From assembly GCA_905178155.1 (NCBI GenBank), contig CAJINV010000004.1:5477711-5541710 (forward strand): a stretch of 64,000 nucleotides of DNA. Reading direction: 5' to 3'. Below, in pieces: positions 45,872 to 63,344 of this stretch. Every line of letters starts with the position of its first letter. The first letter of the stretch is position 1. This DNA comes from Amoebophrya sp. A120. Taxonomy: Eukaryota > Protista > Dinoflagellata. Both the position numbers and the translations under genes were made by a program. Below the pieces are notes generated by a model. The model did not search any database. It saw nothing but the letters and a program-made list of their open reading frames with translations, and was not told the DNA's origin.

Positions 45872-48800
45872 GTAAGCCACGCCTCCTCACGCCTTGGTTT
45901 TGTTCGTGTGCAGTTCCACCATAAAAGTGCAATGCCATGAGCGAACGTCTTGAATGCTACATAGCATGCCGATAATTCTATATATGATACTTTGTATTTC
46001 TCCCCAACGGGATCTGTATGTAAAAGCAACATTTTATATTTTCAACCTTTCCGCTACGCAAAAATAAGGATCGACTACTGATGCACTCTTTTTGAAAAAT
46101 GAAACACGACCAGCACCAAGTGCATCATCTCCCGTGAAGACCAGCTTGAATGAAAAACTTCCGCACATGTTGCTTTTTGCAATGTAGTTTTGCACACGTC
46201 GATACTGAATAACAACAGATCTATGCAACAAACAGTCTTGTAACTATCCTTCTTTTATTTTCCCGTGCAACCAAAATTGTTTGACACCACGAAAGAGTGG
46301 CTAAGAGTGGTTCCGAAAAGTCGGAAACTACGAAAAAAAACAAAATTGCAACTTCTTTTGACTTCTATCTGTAATCACACCTTCTACTTAATGATGATGA
46401 TCTGTATTTGTATGTGGTATTGGCGGGCCTGATTAAAAAGCGTTACAACAGAAGCTATTTTCTTGTCTTTTTAATTACTTGACGGCATTCCTATCATGCT
46501 GTCATGACCACCTTCCCAGCGGCGCCGGCGAAGCTCGACTTAGAGTTTTCGTAGCGGTTCATGTCCGTTGGAAAGACCCAGCCAAAAAAAAGTGGGGCGA
46601 AAACGAAACCGCGCGTGAGTAGAAGTTTTTGCTTGTAAGAACTACAAGGTGTGCTCTTTTTACGAGTATGTTTAAGGCGGTTCCATTTTCCTTGTTCTGC
46701 TTCGGCAACGACAAAACAAGCGAGCTACTTCTGCGAGTACTCAAGAAAGCCTTTTGAGGACTTGGTAACTAGACTGAGGTGCCGCCCATGCTGTTTGGTC
46801 TGATGGGTGTTTACGCGCGTAAGCGGTCTCGACGAATTGGTTGGACATACTGTGTGGCTCAGCCGCACTCGTTGTCGTGTCGGTTTCGACCCTCACGCGG
46901 CGACAGCTGCCTGTCTGGCAACCTGTCACCGCCTCTTCGTGGCCTTCGCCACCGGTCGTTTGTGCTCGACCCTGCCTCCTTTCGCTGTGCGACTGGGGGT
47001 GGGTCTCGGGTACAAAACGACCGTCCCACCTCGGGGGAGAGGTCAACTTCTCTTGTCCTGGATGACAAAGTTACCACCTCTTGGTACACCATCGGTTCAT
47101 CTGCGATGAATCTGTGCCCGTCGGCACTGTGGCTGCGTCTTCGCGCCACGCTGCACCTCACGCAGCGCTGCACCTCACGCAGCACCGTCGCGTCGATGCG
47201 ACTTTGTGTCCCTCACGACACGCGTCTGTGGTGCGCGAGCACCCCTTCGCACCCAGTGCTGCCTCTGCAGCACGCGTTCTTACGCTGCCAGCTTCCCCGA
47301 GGGGAACCGAGCAACGTGCGGTTGGACACCGCAAGGCGTGTGTGTTATGCTCCACCGGTGTACAGGCTAGAAGACCTGTGCACGCGTCGGTGTCGGCACT
47401 CACACTTCATGCCTAGGGGGCGCTGCTCTGGCAGCTGCCGCGCCCCCGCCGCCTTGCACTTCCCCGTCTGGTCCAGATAGGGTTGTGTAAGTGCATAGGC
47501 CCGTGCGTCGTGCGACCTCGTAGGTGAGGGTCGGGCGCATGGGCCTCCCGCCCGCACATCCAAGTGCGGCGCGGGTGGCGTCGTGGGTCCAGCGCACCGC
47601 TCGTGCGCCTGCGATCCTGACGTCCTCCCGGGGGGCGCGCGTAGCGCTCCCCGTCCACCTCTCGTGCCACCCGTGGCACCGGCGTGTCCCTCCACTGTGA
47701 TGTGGGACGACACGCCGTCCTTCCCCCCTGCACTGCACGGTCGGGCAGCGGCGGCAACGCCTTGTTGCACTCGCACGACCCGCCCGTCCTGCCCTGCGCG
47801 ACCTGCGCGTCACGCAGGCGTGCTCGCGTGGTTGCACAACCGTGTGCACACGCTCTCGACCCTGCCTCGCACGCATGCCAGCGGGCATGCGCGCGATCGC
47901 CGGCCTGCGCGCGCACGTTGGCGCACATGCGTGTGCCAGTGCGCACGGCTCGGCACAGAGGCAGCTTCACTTGTTGGCGCGCGCACACGGTCGTGCCCGC
48001 CAGCATGAGTGCAGTTGTACGTGCGGGCTCCTGCGCCCGCACGGCCAGCTCACAGTACCGCACGCGCAGATCCCACCTGCACGTCCGCGTGCGAAGGCCT
48101 GTGTGCCTTTGCACGCGGTAAATCGAACCTGCCCCCTGGGGGTGCCGTGTGTGCACACATGCAGGTCACGGCGGCGGTGACGCCGTGTTGCAGCGAGCGG
48201 TGTCCCCCCTGGCACCACACGCCGCTCTCCCGCACTACAACGCAGTGACGGCTCGCCTGGAGCTGTGTTGCAGTGCCGCCCTGTATGGGCTGCCGGTTGT
48301 CGTTGGCTGCGAGCCACGACAATCGGCTCTCGCCCTGCTGGTGCCGTGCAAGGCACCAGCAGGCGGTGTTTCCCCTTGTTGCATAAGCAGGACAACACCA
48401 CCGACATGGACGTGACTGGCATCGTCGCATCACGCGCTGACGACCCTCGCGAACGACCTGCACCCGCCCACCGTGGACAGCGGACAGGTACAGTACTACG
48501 CTATTAGTTAATCATGCAGCAGGACGTGTTTCTTGAGTTAGCACACTAAGCCCGACGCATAAACCACAGCACAATCATCAGGTGACACCCGCTACCGCCA
48601 CTCGCCCGTGACCATCATCGACATGCACGCAGCCACGAACGAGATTTGCAGTCAAGACACCTTGTGTAAATCGCTCCCGAACTCACTTTGTACAGCAGCA
48701 CAGGAACTTATGCGCACTAGCTTACATCTGCCGCTTCAGCTAAGCACTCGCCTCAAGGTGTGCAGGATCTTGCAAGAGGAAAAGCTTGATGTTCGCTCTT

Positions 48801-49009
48801 CCGTTTTTCGCACTGAGATCACGATCACTTTTTTGACTTTTTGTTTGCTTTGCGCACCAGAAAGATCGCGATCTGTTCCATGCTACCACCAAGAGCACGT
48901 CGCGTGCCCGCGGTTTGGATCTCGCAGTGCAGCGTGCGCTGACAGCGATCACCCTGTCCGATGTTCTTCTACATTGTTAGCAGGATCGCCCCCTCTTTAG
49001 CATCAGAAA

Positions 49010-49270
49010 ATGCCGATTAAGGTGCACAGCGAGCACAACGCTGTAAGGATCGTGGAACTTACATGCCAGTCGACCCTATGCTGGGAAAGAATCGAAAGTG
49101 ATGCGTTACGGACCGCGCACGTGGTCGCAGGCCAGCGTGTCGCGATCACGTACTACCGAACCACAGGAGCGTTGTTGTTCCAGGGTGGTGCGGCGCAAAA
49201 TCATCTCTCCGAGACGGCCCAGGCCTTGATAGACACGCTCAAAAAGGCAATGCCGGCCGCCACGCTGTGA
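49010..49270 (+). CDS. Small element ORF with ITYYxTTGxLLxQG motif (resembles TBP-like / RNase HIII N-terminal fold)
   Basis: VAITYYRTTGALLFQG motif; ATG to TGA, 86 aa. Confidence 0.55.
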   Translation: MPIKVHSEHNAVRIVELTCQSTLCWERIESDALRTAHVVAGQRVAITYYRTTGALLFQGGAAQNHLSETAQALIDTLKKAMPAATL

Positions 49271-49356
49271 TCTTGTCCTTTTCTCGCTCGCTCGGCACAA
49301 TGAACAATCACCAGAAACATAGGAGAACTTGTGTAATGCCTTCTCATCAATTCAAG

Positions 49357-50207
49357 ATGGACTTGTACAGTATGGCCCAGCGGCAGTACATAGTGGAGCA
49401 CCACACCAGAACCGACACCAAGGAGAAGTGCGATCGGTTCATGAGCGACTTGCTCGACACCGAGTCTATCGAGGACTTCGTTGACGCCGCCGCAGAAGCT
49501 GCCCTGGGCCGAGAGTTCGGGAGCATGCCAGAAAGGTAATCTTACTGCCCTAGCCGCAAAAGAATACGGCGCGTTTGTGCGAAAAGCCCCCTCATTTGTG
49601 TGTTTTTTCAGCCCTTTCTGTGAAGCCATGTTGATGCTGTGCTCGGTATGCCAGGAAATTTTTAACAAGCAAATTGCCATTTATTTCTTGCTACAGGTAC
49701 ACTGCGAGTCGCCAAGCGAAGCGCAACAAGAAGTCGCCGGCGCGCTCTCCACCGTTGGCCCTGTGCAGCCAAAATTTGCGACGACTCGAGCAGCAAAATA
49801 CGGGCGAGAAACAGACTCTGCACAGAAATTCCGTCGTGGTGAGAGGACCCTCCGACAAGCCACATGCTGCCGCCCCCGAGCTAACCAGCGAGCAGAAGTG
49901 CGACTTACAGAATTGCGTCTCTGGCGCTGGCGGTTCTGGTTTTTATAACCAGCTCGACTTTGATGAGAAAGTGAATGCTTGGAGCGATCGATTTAATGAG
50001 CTCGCAGCGAGAAACTCCTTAGAGCTAGCAAGTGTGCCGCTAGAGCAGCTGAGCGAAGGCATCGAGAAGCGTGTTGCTCTGATGCATAAGGCAGGACACA
50101 GGCCCCGTTCTTGCAACATCGAATTGGATTACTTTGGTCAGTATCGCTTTGCAGTGCGGTACGACCAAGGCGAATATAGATTCCGCCCGGCGATCACCGA
50201 GGACTAA
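49357..50207 (+). CDS. Element accessory ORF, two exons (intron 49536-49696)
   Basis: ag|gtaat...ctacag|g joins MPER-YTAS in frame; start could be 49300. Confidence 0.65.
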
Positions 50208-50613
50208 GTAATTATAGGACTTTGTAATTGTGCAGTACGTCACTGCTGCCCCTTTTTTGTGATCCACTGCTCTCGCACCCTGTTCGCCCGCAGTTCCACA
50301 TTGATCAACCATGGGCCATGCGGCAACGCAGCAGCTTGCCATGCAGCCACACACCCAACAAGAAATAGATCTCATCGCGACGCAGCAGCTCGCAGAGAAC
50401 AAGTTCCGCGATGATCAAACAGCGGGATCAATGATCCAGCGACTCGGCAGGATCAAGCAGCAGGATCAAGCAACAGGATTGAGTCGGTTCTTTCTTTGTT
50501 GCTTGCGTTATTGCGTGCAGGCCCGAATTACACGTAATTCACCCACCAATTAGGCTGTTTATGACGGGAAGCAAACTACTATTCACAAACTCAAAGTTAA
50601 ATTATCAACAAAG

Positions 50614-53600
50614 ATGGCCAAAAACAAAAAAAAGACCGCGACACCCAAAGCCGGCGCCGCCGGCAGACGAAAAAACAGTATGGCGCTTTCTATAGCAATT
50701 TGCTGTTGCACGCTGATCAGCGCGCGCTTGTAGAAGGAAAAAATTGTTGTAAGCAATCTGTCCTGGAATATTGATTCGCCCCTACGATCAAGCCACTTGC
50801 GTCAGAAAAAATTATCAATCTCTTTCCTTCAGGTAAAGAAGATAAGCTGCAGCTACAAGAGGAGATCCGAGTAGACGAGCCAGCACCAGCGGACCAGAAG
50901 GCCGCGCACGACCCCCCTGCCACAACCCCCTTTGCCGAGCGCATGGCCGTATCGGACGAAGCAGCCGTGTACAGCGCCAAAATTCAGGAAAAAGCCGTGG
51001 ACTACGACAAATCTCAGGAAACAGCCGTGCACACCGATGCCGCTGCTACAAGCCAGCCTGCGACCGTCGAGAAGGAAACAGCCGTGCGCACCGTGGTCGA
51101 CACAGCCGTGCATCTGGCCCCCCTTCGCACCGACCCCCAACCCAACGACAAGGACGCCTTACCGCCATTAAGGAGAAGCCAGGAATTTCTGTACCAACAC
51201 CACCCGCAATTCCACGCCCCAGCGACAGGCAACATTTACAAATAGGGACGTAGTGCAGTGATTTGTGAGTGAGAGCTGTTTTTGTTTTTGGCGTGTCTTG
51301 TCCGCCCTGTGTTTGTGCTGTCCCGACTTAGTCTTGTCCACTACATCACGGCGTGTCGCGTCCGCCAGCTACCAACTGTTGTCGACGAACAACAGCTGAT
51401 GTGAGAAACAGTGTCAAGCAACAAATCTCGTTGTCGGTCCACAGAGCGCTTGCAACGGAGAATTAATTGACAGATACCCCGCTTCTCGCCCGAGACGCAC
51501 CTACGCCGTCGTCACCGAAGGTGACCAGCCTTCTCCATCTCGTACGCCCACCACCCGTATTTGACCTCCCGCTCCTGCCAAGACGCACTGTTCCAGGCAC
51601 CCCTCCGCGAACGAGCGTCGCCCTCGTGCCCCCCAAGGATCTGAGCCCAGACCCGCCATCTGAGTTCAGAATCACCGAATCCGAACTTAGCCACAGCGTT
51701 CAATTTGATCCAATGGACCACGCGATGCTACAGGAAGCGATCGACAGCGAGGACGCCATAGGTAAGGAGACCGAGGACAAGAAGACAGTGAGACTCCGCA
51801 TGAATCCCACTTCGCCGTCTACAGCTGGTATAAAAAATCGACTCTGTGTTAATCAAAATCGACTCTTGCATGCGAGCAAGGATGTATCGCATGGAATGAA
51901 ACCCGCCTTGCCTGTCATGCAATCCCCCCCCTCCCATGGTGGGCCCACGTGGCACCCTGCTACACGATGGTGTGATAATATCAAGCGCTTGGCTTTGCAG
52001 GTATCATAGATGAGCAGCCACCAGCTGAAACGCAAGAAACCGAGGCTGGCGTGCCCCCATTACCGCCTTCAGGCGACACCAAGAACAAGCTTCCCGCCCC
52101 GACAGAACCAGAGGCGCCGAAACAAACCACGACCATCGGACCGCACGATCGAGAAAGGATGGACAGCATAGTGAAGAAAATCAAAGCACAGCAGGAGGAG
52201 CGTGCGCGGGAGAGAGCCAAACAGCAACAAGCTGCTTCCTCTTCTCTCTTCGGTATCAAGAGCTCGTCGGTGCCATTTGATCAGTCGCATCCCCCGGTAC
52301 TAGGAAACTTCATCAACAGGGAAAAAACAGCTACGGCGCTCTTCCTCGGCCCGTCCCCAATCAAGAAATCTTCCTCGCCGCGCCGAGTCACCTCGACGCT
52401 CGCCGACTACAAGTTCGACCCATCACAACCGAGCATATTCGATCTGGGAAAACAAATCCGGAGCGACCAAGGAACAACTCGCAATCGATGCTCCTCGTTG
52501 GCGCCGCAGGACGACGAGTTCGACCTGTTCGGCAAACAGAGCAGCAACAAAAGCGACCACACAGCAAAGAACACAGCGACCAGCAGTACCTCCCAGCAAA
52601 AAGGCAAGGATGAGGAGGCCAAGCCAGCGACAAGCAAGGCCAATACCGAAAAGAAAACAACCGCTCGCAGCAAAAAGGCGGACACAGGAGAAAAAGCCAG
52701 CACAGGCAACAAGCGATCACGCAGCAAAAGCTCGGACCAAGAAGACGCGTCCAAAAAGTCCAGAGGACGGCCGAAGAAGCATGCGGCCCCCCCAGCGGAT
52801 AAACAGCCAGCAACATCCTCTGTCTTCGCACAACCCGCGGCAGCACTCCCACCGGTGCCGAAAGCGGAGGAGCGCACAACAGCGGAGGTACTCCCGCGAG
52901 GCATCCTGAAGAACGCCATTGCAGCCGACAGACCCACGATGCAACCCTTCAAGGTCCCGCCGTTGAAAATTGACCCAGTCGGTGATCGAAGCAAGCTCAA
53001 CAGGTTTCAGCTGGTCACAGCGCGTCTACGTCGACAGCCACCGCATGGACTACTGGGGCCGATTGCAAGAACGAGTACCAAAAGGAGCTGATGGCTACAG
53101 CATCACATTTAGCAGTGGACTCCCGTTCCAAGAAATAATGCGTCGATTCGAACTAGTACAAGTGCAACTTGACCGAGCACCATCGGCGTCGGCTCTCCGA
53201 GACCTGCAATCCAAATTGTTCATCAACGTCCACAAAGACAGGTGCCCAGCGTCCCTGGACGCTGGGGACTGGGGAGTAAGATGCTATCCGAAGAATGCGG
53301 GATTAGCACTTTTGACAGGAGCGACACGACGACCCGACTTCACCTATCCACAGCACCCAGGTGATGATGCACTTGGGCACGCGTTCACGAACAAGCATTG
53401 CAGTGACCGATACTGGAAAAGGTATATCCCCCCCCTCCCCTCTCTCTACTCTTTGTCTGTCATGCAGATCCGTGTCATGCGAATGCCACTAATGAGAGCA
53501 GACCTCTGAGCGCACATTATTGCAATATCAACCATCACACACTAATCACAGCGTGGTACGCGGCGACATACTGAGCGACGCAGTTTGCTTATCCGCCCCG

Positions 53601-56340
53601 GCGAGAGACCAGACGTCACTAACGCTAATGACGGTGATACCGAAAGACCTCAAACTCCCAGCCCACTCAGTACGATACGCCTGGTATCATGCAAAACGAG
53701 CAGGATGTGTCCCGAACTGGCTAGCAGAACACATAGAGGGACGCTTCGCGCGATATGCACAAGTGCCGATGCAAGGCGCCGTCATTGATGAACTCCACCA
53801 ATTTCCGGAAAGCCCCATGCAGTTGGAACCAACTTTGTACCTGATGTACCTCGACTGGCTGGAATTCTGCCGCATCATATGGCCGCTACACAAGGATCTC
53901 AACAGCCGGACGATGAGGGAGCACGCGAGGCACTTCCACAGGGCGGCCGTGCACCTGGGGCAGACCAACCGAAAAAGGTATTACCAGCCGAAGCATTGCA
54001 AGCCAGCAGGCGCTGAGTTCACAAAACAAAATGACCTGCTCCGGAAACTTCTGGTGGAGAATGACATGCAGGCCATGCAGCACTACGACGATCTCCATCC
54101 CATCCATCTGGACCAGCGCAAAGAAGTCCCCTTTGATCAGGTCGAAGCAACCACGTCCGAGGACGAGGACGAAGAGGATGATGGCGAGGAACTCTCGGAC
54201 GACTACATCGAAGCAGAAGAAACCAATGCCACCAGCGCAGCAGAATCTACTGCCCAATCCGAGAAAGAGGAGCCATCGGCGAAGAAACCGGTTAAGAAGC
54301 GTACATCAACAGCCGCGCGGTCCACATCTCAGCCTCGAAAAACCGCCGCTGCTACCACACGGCGCAAAAAGACGGACCCCCCGCAGGCCTCCTCGACCAC
54401 GGCAGCAGCAGTGCCCACCGTGTTAGAACAAACCACGGGTACGGCGCCCAACCGGCGACGCCGCGACAGCAGAGGCGACAGTCGCGGAAGACGACAACGC
54501 AGAAGAGACAGCAGAGGACGCGGAAGCAGAGCAACGGCTCCACACAGCAGACCAGTCCAACTAGCCGCCAACATCCTCCCATCTCATCGCACCTGCAGCC
54601 GATCTGTGTCGCCCGGCGACCCAGTCGATCGGTACAGGAGATCCTCCTTCTCGCCAGTACAAAGCACGACCTTGCTCCAGCAAACGAGTTCCAAAGGAGC
54701 TGGAAAAGGAGGAGGCGACCCATTCTCATTCACCAGGGATCGGCGACCAAGACAGCGACAACGATCACCCATAAGCATATCGTCGGCATCGCAGTCACCA
54801 GCCCAGTCCCCCAGTCGGCGCCGGCGTCACGATCGCAGCCGCCAACGACGGAACAATGAGCAGGATGATCAGGATCCGATCAGCCGCCTCATCACCGCGC
54901 TTACTGGTCGCGCCGAGTCAGCTACAGACTCGGCGCCAAGGGAGCGGTGCCGTCTCACCAACCGGAGATATTACAAAGAAGCAATCGGCATAAACTACGA
55001 CCACTACAACAACAAGACCCCGCACTTTGAAGCTGACTCCGCGCACTTCTACGTGACGGTGGGCAGTGTGACAGTGAAACTCAGCCCAGTACTGTTCTGC
55101 CACCTCATGCAAGTTGTCGACGGCCACCGCTCTTGGACCGCGGAAAAATATGCAAAGGTGAGCAACATATTCCACACATTGCACGAAGGCTCCTCTCTCA
55201 TTTCCGGAGACGACAACGATGAGCGGATTCAGAAACAAGCACTAGTAGCAATCGCGACGAATCAACCGGCCCTCGACGTGCCCTACACGCGCGCACAAGC
55301 GAAAACGAAGGTAGAAGACATGTGGACTGCCCCGATTATCGGCGCCCAGCACAAAGACCAGATGATCAGCATCCTCGTCGCCCTGTCTCTCCGACAAGCG
55401 GTCAGCGGTGCTGGACTACAACCATCGTTCTTCGGCGTCACGTATGAACTCCTCTCCACGGCCAAAAAGGAGTTCCAGGCAGCAGTGCAAGCAAGCGGCT
55501 ATCTCAACGTCTCAAGTAACTGGACAAGAAGTCGCAGATGAGCCGACATTGAAGAAAACGTTAAAAGACTTCAGTGTCGCCTCGATTGTACTGCTAACGC
55601 CTTACGTGTTCAAGCTCTGGAACCAGGATTACGAGCAATGCCACCGCATGCGGGCGTCAATCTGCAAAATTCCCAAAGCGGGGACCTGGGTGAAGATCAA
55701 CCCGGTGGTCGCATTTCACGAGGTCATCAACTTCTTGCTGCTAGAGAACCCATCGAGCAAGCCGTCCCCGGCGCAATATGTGAAGTCGTTGCAACACCTA
55801 CACATTCATTGCGGCACGGGCCACGCAGGCGGCGTCCCCCCGTCCTTCACCTCGGATTTCTCCTTCGGTACATCAGTGAGCAACACCGCAGCAGCGTCTA
55901 CTACAACAACAAAAGCTGCTACGACTACGACCACAACCACCACGGCTAAAACTAAAGCGGAGCGGCTGCGGGAGCAGAAAGCCAAGAAACAAGCCAAGAA
56001 AAAGGCGGAACAGGAGAAGAAGAAATCGTTTAAAGAACGAGGCGAAGCTCGAGCCAGCACTTTTCATGAAATTGAGAATCAGGTTATCTGTCAAATAGCT
56101 GATAGTTTTGATGGACCAGATCCAAAAGTACGGCTGCGCCAACCTGGCGTGTGCATATGCGATGTAGCTAGAGAAATGGGCTTGACACGCACAACCAAGG
56201 ATGGCAGCGAGCAGTTGACTCAATGTCGACCCAAATCTAAGCACGTCAAGGGCAAAGGCAAAGTCGCAGTTTCTCGACCATGCGAGTCACGACATAAAGA
56301 AACCAAAAAGATTGCTGCTCTGTACAAGGTGAAGGCGTAA
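50614..56340 (+). CDS. Long gag-like/low-complexity element protein region (four introns, two +1 junctions), Cys/His cluster at C-terminus
   Basis: Introns 50678-50832, 51229-51473 (GC-AG), 51828-52000 and 53422-53551 all restore frame; +1 junctions near 53.0 and 55.5 kb. May be 2-3 separate genes. Confidence 0.6.
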
Positions 56341-56661
56341 ATACCCCATCAGAACACAATATCGCCAGCGTCTTCGCGCGCAGCACAGTTGTTTGCAACC
56401 TCCGCCATTGGCTGTGGCTTTTTGTACAAAGACAAAGTAAGCAAGTGTTCCCAGCATTCAATCGCGTGTCGTGGTCATTCGGAAAATGCAGCTCTGTTAC
56501 ACGTTCGTCATCGGATCCACGAGCCCAGATCTCGTTGCACCTGTGTCGAAGCGCCAACAGTTGCAAAATAGCAGCAGCAACTCGCCATTTACGCTAGTAC
56601 TTTACCCCAAAAGCAAATGAAAATGCCACGCCTCGCCCTCTCGTGTCTCGCTGCAGTCACC

Positions 56662-59124
56662 ATGTCGCTTCTTGCCCCGACCCCGGAGGAAGTCATCGCA
56701 GACTTAGCCAAATACGCCGCGCCGTCCGATCAGGTATAAGTACAGCGCTCATGTTGGTAATCGGAAGACCTACTATGCATATCTCAGCCCCCTTCATAGG
56801 CAACGCATACTACCACCCACCACAGGAAAAACTGGAAAGGGTGGAGCGCCTCCAGATGGCCCTGGAAGACGTCCGCAGCAACTCGGTGCGACCCGAGCAA
56901 CAGGATCTCCTCGCGCAATATGAAGCAGAGCGGGCCAAGGTGCCTCATTTGCAAGCACTACACGAATTCTACGCGCGGGATCGGCCAGACATATGCAAGA
57001 CCAAAACATATGTCAAGCAGCCTCTCATGTGGTGGAACCTCGCCAAACGCCACGACTACCTCCAGCACGCCATCACGATCAACAAAGTAGTACTCGATCA
57101 GCTGGCGCCGCCCGGTCCGGAAGACGAACCACCGCTCGAAACGATGGCAGATCGGGTATATGGTCCCAAAGGTTACCTCAGCACGGGATTTCCGCACCGC
57201 GGACCGATTGAGCTATACAAAATCTGGCACAGAGCCAAGGACATGACCCCCGACGAGACCGTCCGCTACCTAAATTGCCCCACCACGCAGGAAGCAACTG
57301 ACGACGCCCTTGCCAAGCTCAATTTCACAAGGACAACTCCGCACACCTTCGAGACGCCGGAGATGCTCCAGCGCGGCTGGGACGAGCTCCAAGGCAACAT
57401 ATTCAACCCAGACGACCCGAACTCTGCCCCTGTTCTCATGCGAGCCGATGCAACACCGGAGCAGATGCTAGGGAAAACAGTCATCCCCATATTCCACATC
57501 GGCCAAAGATGGGACCACGAGAAGCAGCACTTCTCCAAGATAAGAGGAATCGCCAACGAAAAACACGCGAACAAAGTGGCGTCGGCCTACGGAGAACACA
57601 TGACGATGCCCCACCTCCCAGTCTGCATTGAGAGATGCCGCGCATGCCTCTGCCCTGGACGGGCCCCGCCCCTGGTCGAACTCAAGAAGCACCTCAGGGA
57701 ACAATTGGAGCAGGAAAGAAAGCGATCCGGCAACTGGCAGGATTGGAAGATGGTGGACGTCAACATCAAAGGGCGCACCAAGCGAGTAGGTGGCTTCACG
57801 CCATTCATCAGCAAAATTGACAAATGGCAGGCATATTTCCAACTCCCCAATAACAAACCCAGCGAATACTACATGGCAGCGTGGAACCCAAAGGAACAAC
57901 GCTACAAATTCTTCATCAACAACGCCATGTCCTTCGGCAATCTCCATTCGGTATACCATTACTGCGGAGCAGTCAGCGGCTACGTGGAAACAATGATAGA
58001 GCGATGCCTCGGCATCAGCTGCCTGCGCTATGTGGACGACGTCATCCTGTTCACCCCTGAATGGATGGCCCCAGCAGCGCGCCAGGCAGTCAAGCAGTTT
58101 CTCGGCCTCCTCGGACTCGCATCGGCCGACAGGAAAGACATCATAGCGCAACGGAATGTGCCCACCGATGTGCTAGGCGTCGACGCCACCAGCTCCGCCG
58201 ACGACGTCTCATTCGCAATGGCACCAGAAAAAGTCGCCAAAGCAGTGACCACAGTCACACGGATGCAGAGCGCGATCCTCGACAGATCGTGTGCCCTCCT
58301 CGACGTACAGCAAGCACTAGGAGTCACCTGCAGTCACATCTTCGCCAGAAGATGCCTAGACCACAGCCCCGCTGTGCGCCTACTAGCCAAGTACACAGCC
58401 CCGCGAGTCATCTCCAACCTCATCACGCAGGGCACCGATTCGCACGTGCTAGCAGTAGCAGCCATGGTTGAAGAGGCGAAGCAAGCTATCAAGGAAAATA
58501 AGCCGCTATCTCTTGCGGCGCGCCTGAATGGAGCCGCGACTGTAGAAATCTTCACTGATGCAGCAGCAGAAGGCAACGATGTATATGTTGGGGGAGTCAT
58601 CTTCACAGCCGACGAGCCAGTCCCTCTCTGTTTCTCGTACCACTTCACGCATGGCCCGAACGGGCCTCCAGGCAGCACCCAGCTTCCAGTTGGGCTTGCT
58701 ACGTGACGAGAAGATTTTTGTGTACGAACTGCTTGCAGTCTATCTCGCAGGAGAGTTCTGGCAAAACTACATCCGACACGCGAGAGGAATCAGCCACATC
58801 GACAATTGTGGCTCGGCATACGCTATCATTCGCGGAGCATCATCGGCTGTCGCCGGGTCAGTCCTGTCTTCGATGATCGCTCAACTATGGAGGGGGCTGG
58901 AATTTACTCCAGTCATTCACTACATCAACACAAAGCGCAATCCAGCGGACGCGCTGACGCGACTATCTCTGATGCAAGCATTCTTTAAGCTAACATCCGC
59001 CGATAACAGGTCCGCTGAATATGGTGAATTACTCAGGCAAGCGATCGACAATGCCGCTACTCGCATCCAAAACTTCAAGCTCAAGTACGAGGAAGCCCTC
59101 GTCAGCAAATCCACCACGGGCTAA
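56662..59124 (+). CDS. pol: Reverse transcriptase + DIRS1-type RNase H
   Basis: KIDKWQAYFQL, AMSFG, YVDD (58029-58040), VLGV; RNase H FTDAA, YELLAV, HIDN, NPADALTR. Intron 56734-56825; +1 shift inside RNase H near 58.65-58.70 kb. Confidence 0.9.
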
Positions 59125-59185
59125 AAACATAGCAAGGGACCCCGATGCACGCCTCGAGTATCAAGACCAGCTCTGGGTGTGGCCG

Positions 59186-60183
59186 ATGGAGGCGAGCTTT
59201 CCCCATCAATCTGTCAAGCAGCGGGAAGCTCATTGGACGTCGTTCGTTAGCTGGTGGAATTCATTAACCACCACCAAACCCAGCGACCGAATCTACATCC
59301 CGAAATACGGCGAACCGATGACGCACCTCCAGTGCCCCACGTTCACCTACCTGCGAGAAATTTACAGCGTCTCGGAGTTCCTCATCGAGATGGACATGAG
59401 CCGAAGCCAGGCAAATTACACCTGCGCGGTCATCTCCAGACTAAAGCAAATAGGTGCTTTTTCTTTCTTTTCGTGGCACCTTGCGTCGCTATGTGTCTTG
59501 CATCATTCGACAACTCGTGATCAAACGCATCCTCTGAATCAACAACAGGCAAAATGGAAGTCACTGACAACATGAAGCTGCTCACCAACTCCGTCAATCG
59601 GCTACGGGAGCAATTCTCTGCCGCAAAAGCCAAACCGGTGACAGCGGCCAGGGTGAAACTACTCAACCAAATAGACAAGAACATTGCACGCTTCTGGGTT
59701 TGCTCCGGACTGCGAGCTGCCTCAATGCAGTCAATCGACATCGTCAAGCCCAACACAGACGACCCAAAGTGGGCGACCGCGTTGGTGACAACCAAGTGCA
59801 GCTCAACGGTATCGCAGGTCCAATTTCCCTCCTACGTCCCAGCGAGACTCAGCGGCATGTCACTCCCCTACACCGCCGCCAAGCTAGCGCTAGCGGCCAA
59901 ACACGCAGGAACCACAGGACATGGCCCCAGAAGAACGCTTGCGTTAGTGGTACGCAAGGCAGTGGCACGTTGCAACATCAAAGAGCTCAATCAAGTTCCA
60001 AATGAGACACAAAAGCGCATTTCTCTCCATTTTGATTGGAGCAGCAACAACTGGATGACCAGTTTTCGTGGGTACACACTCGACTACAAGGATCATCTAG
60101 ACGCACCACTATTTGTGGCCAAAGAAGCCTTCAATTATCTCACAGAAGAACTTCACCAACCGATCGACAAAGATGAATATTGA
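59186..60183 (+). CDS. Tyrosine recombinase, two exons (intron 59454-59548)
   Basis: Catalytic set SGLR, TTK, HGPRR, W, FRGY. atag|gtgctt...caacag|gc joins KQIG-KMEV in frame. The frame is open from 59021. Confidence 0.82.
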
Positions 60184-60339
60184 TGGAAAAGAATTTTTTC
60201 AAAAACAAAGAGGTCAGTTTCTGTCGAACAGCGCCGACTTCGAGCGCGCTTTGCTTTTTCTTCCAAAAAAAAAATGCTCTGTCTTGTTCTTGAGCAGGGA
60301 CCACAGCACAGCGACACATCATAGGACCACGTAGTAGCC

Positions 60340-61063
60340 ATGTTGCCCTTTAAGAAGGAAAGCAGTCCGATGACGCCAGAAGAGTTCTCTCAGGATTTTG
60401 AAAAGAGTGCCGCCATCTTCTTTTACAACTACGTCTCCATGCAGAAAATAATCTCACATGATGCGTTTGTTTGTGTCCAGGCGCAGAGCGATAAATTATG
60501 GAGAGACTCGTATCGCGAGGCTATCTCTGCGTGCAAAGATGAGAAATTGAAGAAAGCACTCAATGAGCGCGCCAGCAAGATATTCCTCCGGAAATGCCTG
60601 TCCGAAGAGGAGTGCCTCGACACCACGCTTGCGCGGCTCTCCGCGTCCCGTGCCCGCTACGACGATCAGGCGACCAAGCCCGACCGGCTCCCTCTACCCC
60701 TGGACCGACGGCCGGGAAGCCGTTGACTTCATTCTCTTCTGCGACGACCGTGAATCTGCCCCCTCGCCCTCGACGCCCGCGTCTTCATCCTCCTCCTCGA
60801 AGACAACTATCGGGACCAGCGATGACACCAAGAAACAGGACACCGAGAAGAAGTATTCTTATTTTTTCTTAGGTCTTGGCCTGTTGTTGCCTGTGTTTTG
60901 GTATGCGCGCAGTCACATGCGATGCATTCGATCAGCTCAAACTCGAAACACAGGTAATTTGGCGCCCGCCCGATCACCACCGGTACCAACGGCACAACAC
61001 ACACCACAAGCACCCACCCCACACAAAAAAGGTATAGTCTCTCCCTATTTTGTGATGTCTTAG
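60340..61063 (+). CDS. Post-recombinase accessory ORF(s) with +1 junction near 60.7 kb
   Basis: ORFs 60340..60726 and 60563..61063 overlap; helical, coding-like composition. Confidence 0.5.
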
Positions 61064-61443
61064 TGATGATGCAGAACTTCACTTCTAGTTCCATGCCCCC
61101 CTCCATAACCATGCATAAGCGAAAGAACACTACAGGTGCCGACACACCGACCTACCGTGTAGTAGAACACTGCGTGTCGCCATGGTGCCTGGCAGCTGTG
61201 CCACCGGTGGAGGAAGATGTAATCGGTCGTCTCCTGGAGGATGCCAAAAAACGACTGCAGTGCACGCGAGATCTACTGAAAGAACATGCGTCGAGACTCA
61301 GCAACACTGACTCGCGCGCGCTAGTAGAAGACTTTCTCGCGATCACAACGGAAATGCGCTACTTTTTAGACCTCGCTGACCACGTCTCTCTCGTGATCCA
61401 AAAGCGACAAACCCGGACCTCAGCCTGTATGTTGTGTTTCTGA
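61063..61443 (+). CDS. Post-recombinase accessory ORF, predicted helical
   Basis: 126-aa ORF with amphipathic pattern (RLLEDAKKRLQ...ALVEDFLAITTEMRYFLDL). Confidence 0.5.
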   Translation: MMMQNFTSSSMPPSITMHKRKNTTGADTPTYRVVEHCVSPWCLAAVPPVEEDVIGRLLEDAKKRLQCTRDLLKEHASRLSNTDSRALVEDFLAITTEMRYFLDLADHVSLVIQKRQTRTSACMLCF

Positions 61444-63344
61444 AAGTGCCGTATTGCGAACTGCCGTCAAACACGGCTCAGGTAGAAGAACCTCAGACAG
61501 ACAAATCAAGCTGCTCTGTTTCTGAATTCCAAGAAATATTATCGTGGGATGAGTCCCATCGTCCAGATTCTTTTCAAAAAATATATATTTCTTCGATCGA
61601 GTACCCATTTCTCTCCCTGCATCTGATTTGAGCGATTCCTTCTAGTCTCGATCTCCATCAAATTCGAATGATGATTCGTTTCATTCTGATCCGCAGATGA
61701 GTGATGCAATTCAACATCGGTTGAAGGCACACACGCTTACCCAAATGAATGAAACCGCATGCAGCAAACCATGCGTCCCGGACGATTCCGTGGCCCCACA
61801 GTTACCACAGTGTTCTGAAAGTATGGCACTACCATAGCCCCGCAAAGGCATCACAACTGGCGGGAGGGCGGGCCTCAGGCAGCACGATTGGGAGTATAGT
61901 CTAGCTCACATCAGAGCCGAAGGCTATGTGTGCTCTAGGGGTGAGGCCCACTGCCCGCCCCGCCACTTCTGAAGGACGCTCGCGGTGCGTTTCAGCGTTC
62001 GGGTGTGTGCTCGCGCACCACCAAACGGCGACCTTGCCCCCCTTCGGGGGCGGGGGCCGCTGTAGGCACCCATCGGTCCGTGAACGGACGAAGACCATAC
62101 AGTATGGGCATTGGCACCTGCATAATAGTTAAGATACTAAAAACAAAGTGGGGGCGCCACTAGAATCCATCGCGGTGTTTCTTGTCCTTTTTGTGAGTAT
62201 TTATCGCAGAAAGGAAGCCCCCGGGTCGTGTATTTGCTTTGCCACTGCATTTTTGACAATTCTGCCCGATTACTTTTACTGCCACAAGTTCTGCACGACT
62301 GCGCCGGAGAAATAGATTGTAGCGATCCGCACTACGATTATAGTGAGTTCCGGCCAGCTTGTCGGTGATGTGTATTTTTCGCTGACAGCCAGGAGAGATG
62401 ATTCTAGAAGTAGAAGCAAACACCTGATTGTCAGTAGGAATACCAGAACAGCTGGCTGTGCAGCAGTCCTGACTAATTGAAATGAGTTTTATTGAGCAGC
62501 AATAATATGATTATAAGATATCCAGGTTGAATAAAACGAGAATACAGTAGGCGAGAAGTCAAGCTTTTGAAAAGTTTTTTTGGGTTTCCAATATTTTGGG
62601 CGAGCAAGAATTGCAGTTCATTGTGTGGTTCGCTGCTGACAACAGTCTATTTTTACTGAGAATAATTATTCTGTTATTTAAGCAAAAAATATTTCTGTAG
62701 CAGCAATGTTAGTTTTTTCGAGGAGTAAGAAACGCAAAGGTGTACAAAGGTTATTCAAAAACAGTGCATTTGATGTACTTGTGGAAATGAAATAATCGCA
62801 TGACTAGGCCGATTTCCACAGGTACACTCTAGAAGTGCACGTTCTTGGGAACGAGGAAAAATACGTAGGACATTACAACGCAGTATGTCGATACAACAGA
62901 AAAAAGAGAAAACTCAGACACGTACGATAAGGTAATTTTACGACGCATTGAATGCCGTATCTTTCCAATTTAAAACTTATGTGTTTTATCTGGATGTGGG
63001 CGAGCAGACGAGTCCTGCATTTGGTTGAGGCGAGGTACTGAAAGAACTGATCAGGACAAGGAGAATAAAGTCATTTGTTTTGATATCACACGCGGAAAAA
63101 CAAAACAACCTGCGTGGCGGTGTCTCGAAAAACATCGTATAGAAAACTTGTTGGCCGGGGCCCGTGCGCGAGCAACTCAACGAGGACCTGCACTCAATCA
63201 CGTCGAAGAGGTCCTATTTTCGTGTTCAGTACAAGGGAAAAAAATCACGTGATTCTATTGCCCAAAATTGCACGACTTCAGCCCGCTCCGAGCGGATACG
63301 GCCGTAGAGTAGAATCATGCAAGTGAGTTGTACGGAAATCTGTC

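Follow-up and report, generated by a model that had tools for sequence, protein, structure and literature searches.

A stretch of 64,000 nucleotides (nt) from the Amoebophrya sp. A120 genome (C4:5477711-5541710, hereafter the window) contains a 15.4-kb mobile element, a copy of an Ngaro-like retrotransposon with a predicted tyrosine recombinase (YR). Its order is an A repeat, two upstream genes, a reverse transcriptase (RT)/RNase H region, an overlapping recombinase gene, a further open reading frame (ORF) and a B repeat; the complete form of the element continues with A2-X-B2. As shown in Table 1, the coding region contains seven GT/GC-AG segments, which an earlier note on the window had taken for spliceosomal introns inside a retroelement. 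The segments lie where that note placed them, and the frame arithmetic holds for 7/7: removal of each joins the neighbouring ORFs in phase.

Table 1. Features of the element in the window. Scores are those of the codon-frame model; pN/pS is the ratio of nonsynonymous to synonymous differences among three full copies.
Feature	Position	Strand	Evidence and remarks
Whole element, A1-genes-B1 form, 15.4 kb	46751..62131	+	Alignment to two other full copies ends exactly there
A repeat (A1), ~108 nt	46758..46865	+	Nearly identical to A of five A-X-B units
Gene 1 exon 1 (ATG 49300, frame 0)	49300..49535	+	Score +11.7 vs -18/-35 in other frames; no family match
Putative intron 1, GT-AG, 161 nt (160 nt in other two copies)	49536..49696	+	Deepest GC/AT-skew trough of region
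Gene 1 exon 2 with stop (frame 2)	49697..50207	+	Score +19.5, frame 2 only; pN/pS 0.35
Gene 2 exon 1 (ATG 50614, frame 0)	50614..50677	+	Frame arithmetic with intron 2; 21 codons, too short for statistics
Putative intron 2, GT-AG, 155 nt (156 nt in C12)	50678..50832	+	Composition trough; score negative in all frames
Gene 2 exon 2 (frame 2)	50833..51228	+	Score +32.6, frame 2 only; pN/pS ~1
Putative intron 3, 245 nt, GC-AG in window and C1, GT-AG in C12	51229..51473	+	Second deepest composition trough
Gene 2 exon 3 (frame 1)	51474..51827	+	Score +16.8, frame 1 only; pN/pS 0.31
Putative intron 4, GT-AG, 173 nt	51828..52000	+	Read-through frame -5.3, seen in 3% of true in-frame windows
Gene 2 exon 4, broken by private 4-bp insertion 52989-52992	52001..53421	+	pN/pS 0.24-0.32
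Intron 5, GT-AG, 130 nt, CACTAAT before AG	53422..53551	+	C2 paralogue ORF continuous here
Gene 2 exon 5 with stop, broken by private 4-bp insertion 55476-55479	53552..56340	+	pN/pS 0.37-0.54
Candidate 39-codon RT/RNase H leader exon (ATG 56617, frame 0)	56617..56733	+	Score +10.1, reached by 0.04% of off-frame windows; pN/pS 0.69, few sites
Putative intron 6, GT-AG, 92 nt, ambiguous	56734..56825	+	RT frame open through segment, +1.4; no composition trough
RT/RNase H coding region with stop, broken by private 4-bp insertion 58694-58697	56826..59124	+	YVDD, RNase H motifs
Recombinase exon 1 (N-terminal domain), overlaps RT/RNase H end in +1 frame	59021..59453	+	pN/pS 0.18
Intron 7, GT-AG, 95 nt, phase 1	59454..59548	+	C2 YR ORF continuous; third deepest composition trough
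Recombinase exon 2 with stop, catalytic part (GLRAAS ... HGPRR ... YTLDY)	59549..60183	+	pN/pS 0.16
Further ORF, function not assigned, cut short by private 4-bp insertion 60688-60691	60325..60726	+	Score +27.3, frame 0 only
B repeat (B1), 240 nt	61892..62131	+	97-98% identical to B of A-X-B units

DNA searches of the A120 assembly (115.5 Mb, 401 contigs) returned two further full copies. Identity to the window copy is 95.9% over 13.4 kb for the one on C12, and 95.4% and 92.6% for the two parts of the one on C1. The three full copies, 93-96% identical, have the same ends and unrelated flanks. The junction at the 5' end is TTTTGA/GGACTTGG (the slash marks the joint), and the 3' end reads ...CATAATAGTTA. 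Insertion sites of the element follow TTTTTA, with no target-site duplication found beyond the shared TTA. A search with the RT protein, together with DNA searches using the upstream region and introns 5 and 7, found just these three copies and nothing else closely related.

All of introns 1-7 are present in the window, C12 and C1 copies. The earlier note had proposed asking whether dispersed copies keep the segments or whether intronless copies exist; the C12 and C1 copies keep 7/7, and no intronless copy was found in the assembly with the RT protein and DNA searches. Since these searches return three copies only, there is no processed copy of the element.

Introns 5 and 7 were compared with a paralogous element on C2, whose RT is 55% identical to that of the window element and whose ORFs are uninterrupted. 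Residues 421-580 of the C2 upstream protein align to 52934-53422 and residues 584-772 to 53562-54131, and between the two blocks the protein and the window have the same number of residues. In the C2 YR (371 residues), residues 45-157 align to 59111-59452 and residues 170-371 to 59581-60180, and the 12 intervening residues compare with 11 window codons once the 95 nt are removed. Because the C2 proteins abut at the borders of introns 5 and 7 to within one residue, this alignment makes both of them, with certainty, true intervening sequences, essentially with the borders that were first read. Intron 7 separates the N-terminal from the catalytic part of the recombinase. The YR ORF is continuous also in three more distant relatives (C5, C46 and C6); because it is uninterrupted there and in C2, the simpler history would be a gain of intron 7 in the window lineage after its split from the intronless sister family.

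For introns 1-4, the codon-frame model, composition troughs and stop-codon gaps all make it likely that the segments are introns. The codon-frame model was trained only on exons 52001-60180 and scored on the untrained upstream exons, which came out above zero in the predicted frame alone and below zero in the remaining frames; the 21-codon exon 1 of gene 2, a frame-0 ORF with ATG 50614 upstream of intron 2, is too short for such a score. Off-frame windows of equal length reached the scores of the upstream exons in at most 0.04% of samples, and introns and spacers scored negative. The strongest troughs of GC plus AT skew in the coding region fall on introns 1, 3 and 7, followed by the spacers and intron 2. 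Length differences of 1 nt between copies within 49102-60180 are confined to introns 1 and 2 and the spacers.

Stop codons argue in the same direction. Only 1 nt separates the donor of intron 1 from a stop, and the frame of the next exon becomes open no earlier than 65 nt upstream of the acceptor. Intron 2 has a 41-nt gap from the stop to the next open frame, and in intron 3 one stop is 14 nt downstream of the donor and another 10 nt upstream of the acceptor. For intron 4, the read-through frame meets a stop 137 nt past the donor in C12 and C1, and the next open frame begins after a gap of 11 nt. Because these stops leave a gap between the open frames, a frameshift would be unable to bridge introns 1-3, or intron 4 in C12 and C1.

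The donors of introns 1-7 are, in order, GTAATC, GTATGG, GCAACA, GTATAA, GTATAT, GTATAA and GTGCTT. The acceptor is CAG in 7/7, and AG precedes the donor in 5/7. The cactaat that had been noticed before one AG was found in intron 5, where CACTAAT sits 4 nt upstream of the AG. The splice dinucleotides are kept across the three copies, except that the GC of intron 3 is replaced by GT in one of them. At this low divergence, with 5 of 84 positions varying, splice-site positions showed no detectable conservation beyond that of other intron positions.

Introns of A120 have a median length of 247 nt and 46.5% GC, compared with 56.3% in exons; about 30% are GT-AG, about 3% GC/GA-AG and the remainder non-canonical (PMC7789003). 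The segments fit these introns in size and GC. Introner elements, with terminal inverted repeats and with direct repeats of, most often, 4 nt, make up many of the non-canonical introns (PMC7789003); in Amoebophrya, introners carry 8-20-nt terminal inverted repeats and 3-5-nt direct repeats and occur in multiple copies (PMC7789003). The seven introns were rejected as introners, their terminal complementarity being no better than that of shuffles and no other copies being found. In DNA searches of the genome, the sequences of introns 1-5 and 7 were found only in the three element copies; for intron 6, the whole-element search of the genome gave nothing extra, and no separate search was made for intron 6 alone.

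Ngaro retrotransposons have been described with split repeats of the form A1-(ORFs)-B1A2B2 and with solo AB units (PMC8547959; a definition is also given in PMC13465315). Beyond B1, the C1 copy goes on with A2, which at ~108 nt is almost the same as A1, then with a spacer X and finally with B2; B1 and B2 match at 240/240 positions. In the C2 relative the B repeat measures 251 bp, its two copies being 99.6% identical and 619 nt apart, a spacing that is the same as in the C1 copy. The window copy has A1...B1 only, and no internal, terminal or inverted repeats were found in it; the C12 copy, like it, is an exact A1...B1 unit without A2-X-B2. Four isolated 617-bp A-X-B units were found (C3:6545827-6546443, C20:1049348-1049965, C6:3948062-3948679 and C14:1590794-1591413), and a fifth unit lies head-to-tail behind the C1 full copy (C1:13963809-13964421). 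The tandem joint behind the C1 copy is precise (...GTTA/GGACTT, i.e. ...AATAGTTA/GGACTTGG). The A-X-B units, which carry the first ~108 nt and the last 240 nt of the element, are the equivalent of Ngaro solo AB repeats.

On its sequence, the element is filed as Ngaro-like (DIRS order), with an unusually large size, extra genes and a very divergent recombinase. Like the Ngaro elements of Cafeteria burkhardae (PMC8547959), it has upstream ORFs, then RT/RNase H, then a predicted YR with HxxR and Tyr, and it shares with them the lack of a methyltransferase, the split direct repeats (in the C1 copy and the C2 relative), the scattered AB units and the lack of a target duplication. Unlike those elements, whose length is about 6 kb (PMC8547959), it measures 15.4-16 kb, possesses two large genes upstream, an extra ORF downstream and the X spacer between A2 and B2, and carries up to seven GT/GC-AG introns in coding sequence and a recombinase too divergent for PF00589. 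No methyltransferase family was found with Pfam in any ORF of the element, and the recombinase ORF begins inside the RT/RNase H end. This overlap (59021-59121) is a conserved overlap of two ORFs and is the same in the C2 relative.

Three other assignments were ruled out: DIRS1-like, as no inverted terminal repeats or internal complementary region were found; Crypton, as RT/RNase H is present and constrained; and Penelope-like, as no ORF has a GIY-YIG domain and the repeats are of the split direct type. The identification as a retroelement made in the earlier note is borne out, and the element is mobile.

The RT matched RVT_1 with an E value of 6e-6, just below the Pfam cut-off, and gave 253 phmmer matches among representative proteins (best E 1.8e-63), the top ones of which carry RVT_1. 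The assignment of the tyrosine recombinase comes from motifs and language-model neighbours and is predictive in that sense. The R/HxxR/Y columns are invariant in an alignment of four members of the recombinase family, recombinase exon 2 is 49% identical to the C2 YR, and 22 of the 30 nearest ESM language-model neighbours of the recombinase were PF00589 (Phage_integrase) clusters (0.95). Searches for homologous proteins with the RT and with the YR alignment gave no matches, which has little weight given the limits of the search. The product of gene 2 exon 5 is a long low-complexity basic/acidic protein with no Pfam family match. The further ORF downstream of the recombinase, 244 codons long in C12, likewise had no family match.

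The coding sequences of the element are constrained. Among the three copies, pN/pS was 0.26 for RT, 0.24 for RNase H, 0.16-0.18 for the recombinase exons and 0.24-0.37 for the gene 2 core. The exon that follows the frame-breaking intron 7 is the most strongly constrained. The window copy carries the four private 4-bp insertions listed in Table 1. The C12 copy has four other insertions of 4-5 bp (window-equivalent 53108, 54939, 58831 and 61625) and a 10-bp deletion. Since each disruption is private to one copy, the disruptions postdate the common ancestor. Where the window copy is broken, the C1 ORFs are continuous, with 508 codons (51979-53506) and 946 codons. Programmed +1 frameshifting at 52989, 55476, 58694 and 60688 was rejected, these positions being private 4-bp insertions, which account for the four ORF junctions with the look of +1 shifts. 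Nearly all of the private insertions have the form XYZ-n-XYZ, for example AAGC/AAGC, CAGG/CAGC, GCTT/GCTA and GCGGA/GCGGA. These insertions are reminiscent of the direct repeats of 4 nt in A120 introners, elements whose excision could have left them as footprints.

The C1 copy also has a nested multicopy element at window-equivalent 56769, inside putative intron 6, followed by ~1,470 N; the nested element has at least 5 other copies at 86-99% identity. An apparent 1.7-kb in-frame extension of the RT in this copy was rejected, as it consists of the N run and the nested multicopy element.

Several derivatives and relatives of the element were seen in the genome. The region 47925-48780, which separates the first gene from the conserved kilobase at the 5' end, is hypervariable between copies (~74% identical or unalignable, with many indels) and is ~800 bases longer in C1, while the remainder of the element is ~95% identical. 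Solitary copies of the first 1.0-1.2 kb only are found at C20:1002564-1003778, C12:2779857-2780885 and C5:2906441-2907408, and C1:12306039-12308368 is a 2.3-kb derivative with 5' parts followed by an A-X-B unit. At least 10 further, mutually distant lineages with RT/RNase H and recombinase occur in the genome, with 26-33% RT identity to the window element. Most of them have uninterrupted RT and recombinase ORFs, and in the C5 family RT, RNase H and recombinase are all in one frame. In another distant RT-recombinase element (C13:909481-910254), the RT core is split between NPxxG and FGxxxS by ~774 nt reading GTAAAT...TTTTCTAG, of which the central 600 nt belong to a repeat that occurs at least 10 times elsewhere, at 89-95% identity. 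This insert is either an introner-like insertion or a plain disruption.

We judge the chances to be about even that, the reality of the introns included, this is an intron-bearing Ngaro-type element whose new copies are made from unspliced RNA. A more specific history can be proposed tentatively, in which several spliceosomal introns were gained by an Ngaro-type lineage, in its structural genes, in the RT leader and in the recombinase gene, and the lineage continues to propagate by reverse transcription, with the unspliced primary transcript as template. The proteins of the element would be made from cis-spliced mRNAs. The template for new copies would retain the introns and would most likely be the unspliced full-length transcript, which would be reverse-transcribed and closed into a circle with a B/A joint (...AATAGTTA/GGACTTGG...). 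The recombinase would then insert the circle at TTA in T-rich DNA without target duplication.

A number of observations weigh against this proposal, and some of them concern the introns themselves. In-phase joining by itself, the criterion on which the segments had been chosen, is weak and no better than chance: an enumeration gave 60-251 in-phase GT/GC..AG pairs per junction, and 2-37 when GT(A/G)...CAG was required. Because there are so many in-phase alternatives, the borders of introns 1-4 and 6 are not unique from sequence. Intron 1 scores coding-like in a third frame, and gene 2 exon 2 has no sign of selective constraint. Intron 6 is dispensable for an open frame, as the RT frame is open throughout, and translation from a conserved Met at ~56856 would need no intron 6. 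Its sole support is the coding-like 39-codon leader exon. Intron 6 also lies upstream of the RT domain and not inside it, the homology to the C2 RT beginning 12 nt after the acceptor. We therefore regard intron 6 as doubtful. Taken together, the reading of the seven segments as introns holds for introns 5 and 7 through the paralogue, is supported for introns 1-4 by the frame model, composition and stops, and is ambiguous for intron 6. Of the claimed introns in the RT and the recombinase genes, the one in the recombinase (intron 7) is well supported, through C2, and the one in the RT gene (intron 6) is the weakest of the seven and lies before the RT domain.

Other such observations concern the recombinase, the state of the copies, RNA and the behaviour of a related element. 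Pfam matched no recombinase in any of the ORFs, including the continuous C2 recombinase, a PDB profile search with the recombinase gave chance matches only, and an AlphaFold model of it from the 4-sequence alignment (predicted local distance difference test 44) was too poor for a fold search. Every one of the three full copies is disrupted somewhere. RNA was examined for 51100-57099, which covers introns 3-6, in three raw RNA runs with the same species label; the three runs gave 0 reads on this region, and they may lack the strain or expression of the element. ATG 59554 lies six bases beyond intron 7 and could serve, with no splicing needed, as the start of a catalytic polypeptide of its own. 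DIRS-1 loses a sense intron by splicing when it retrotransposes, although unspliced cDNA is also seen (PMC7192593); because of this loss, intron retention needs a special explanation. Retention would therefore call for the selective use of unspliced full-length RNA, or for a DNA route.

An older run from 2020, of uncertain type and guessed to be RNA, contained 5% of the words. It gave three short contigs at depth 3-4 (52164-52426, 52910-53118 and 53177-53327), all within gene 2 exon 4 and none spanning a junction. They match the window copy exactly, and one of them includes its private 4-bp insertion. If the older run is RNA, the broken window copy is weakly transcribed.

In the DNA route, which we consider rather unlikely, the introns are real and the element moves as DNA without an RNA step: the recombinase would excise the A...B unit as a circle and reinsert it as Cryptons do. 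Recombination would be of flank/A1 with B1/A2, or of B1/A2 with B2/flank, and the RT would be used otherwise or occasionally. The window and C12 copies as exact A1...B1 units, the isolated A-X-B units, the precise tandem joint and the lack of a target duplication are all consistent with such a route. It accounts for intron retention without extra assumptions, and intron-bearing YR DNA transposons are known (PMC13465315). However, purifying selection has acted on RT and RNase H (pN/pS 0.24-0.26) no less strongly than on the recombinase, and split repeats and solo AB units are also expected from homologous recombination in ordinary Ngaro elements (PMC8547959). Cut-and-paste alone, moreover, adds no copies.

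It is improbable that the segments are not spliced at all, being insertions or decay common to three dead copies that were duplicated or mobilised in trans, with short ORFs that have their own starts. The lack of spliced RNA (0 reads in the three RNA runs), the abundance of chance in-phase GT-AG pairs, the disruption of every copy, ATG 59554 after intron 7 and the RT frame open through intron 6 would all agree with this. Against it, exons downstream of the frame-breaking segments are under purifying selection, the upstream coding frames switch exactly across the segments, and the segments are AT-skew/GC troughs of intron-like size with CAG acceptors in 7/7 and splice dinucleotides kept in three copies. 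The disruptions, for their part, are private and younger than the common ancestor. Domestication, which the earlier note had also considered, in this case as a host gene cluster derived from a retroelement with introns acquired like those of host genes, would suit the multi-intron structure and the purifying selection, but it is very improbable and we reject it because of the defined ends and differing flanks (three copies with identical ends at unrelated sites) and the solo and partial derivatives, the family having split repeats, solo units, 5' fragments and a nested insertion, and each copy having private frame-breaking insertions.

Intron-bearing retroelements that may be copied from unspliced RNA have partial counterparts. 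Penelope-like elements (PLEs) are likewise retroelements that keep introns after transposition, and use of unspliced RNA is known in them (PMC8557442), and they have been called highly unusual among retroelements for this intron retention (PMC8557442). Unlike the window element, PLEs belong to a different RT clade and have a GIY-YIG endonuclease and pseudo-long terminal repeats (PMC8557442); their introns are mostly single and in the 5' untranslated region, whereas those of the window element are several and within coding sequence (PMC8557442). In Ogre, EVADE, Cer1 and retroviruses (PMC12786077), unspliced RNA is the genome and spliced RNA serves expression, as proposed here for the window element, and Cer1 encodes an export factor for its own unspliced RNA (PMC12786077). 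Ogre, EVADE and Cer1 have one functional intron, which gives a subgenomic mRNA, together with a DDE integrase and long terminal repeats (PMC12786077). In contrast, the introns of the window element break the frames of separate genes, and every protein would need splicing.

Cryptons resemble the window element in having introns in their genes and no long terminal repeats, and they move through a circle by a tyrosine recombinase, as is proposed for the window element, but they are without RT/RNase H (PMC3212892, PMC13465315). Like SymbioDIRS-Dnmt3 of Symbiodinium (PMC5890265), the window element is a dinoflagellate YR retrotransposon with A-coding-B-A-B repeats; SymbioDIRS-Dnmt3, unlike the window element, is intronless and carries a DNA methyltransferase (DNMT) domain (PMC5890265). 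DIRS elements from dinoflagellates have so far been described without introns (PMC5890265). In a literature search that was not exhaustive, no description of introns in YR retrotransposons was found.

The value of the finding is limited by the precedents of Penelope-like elements, Ogre, EVADE and retroviruses. Intron loss is the classical proof of movement via RNA, and the absence of introns distinguishes retroelements from DNA transposons like Cryptons. The rule of intron loss is broken by an element that encodes an RT, inserts by a recombinase and, under purifying selection, retains in each copy introns that interrupt the reading frames. Either its replication would prove to run through unspliced pre-mRNA, or Ngaro-type elements would prove to move as DNA too; both outcomes bear on the unresolved mechanism of the DIRS order. 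If the tentative history proposed above is true, YR retroelements would be the second order, after Penelope-like elements, with systematic intron retention. Amoebophrya has undergone massive intron gain, and the genes of its own mobile element would not be exempt from it.

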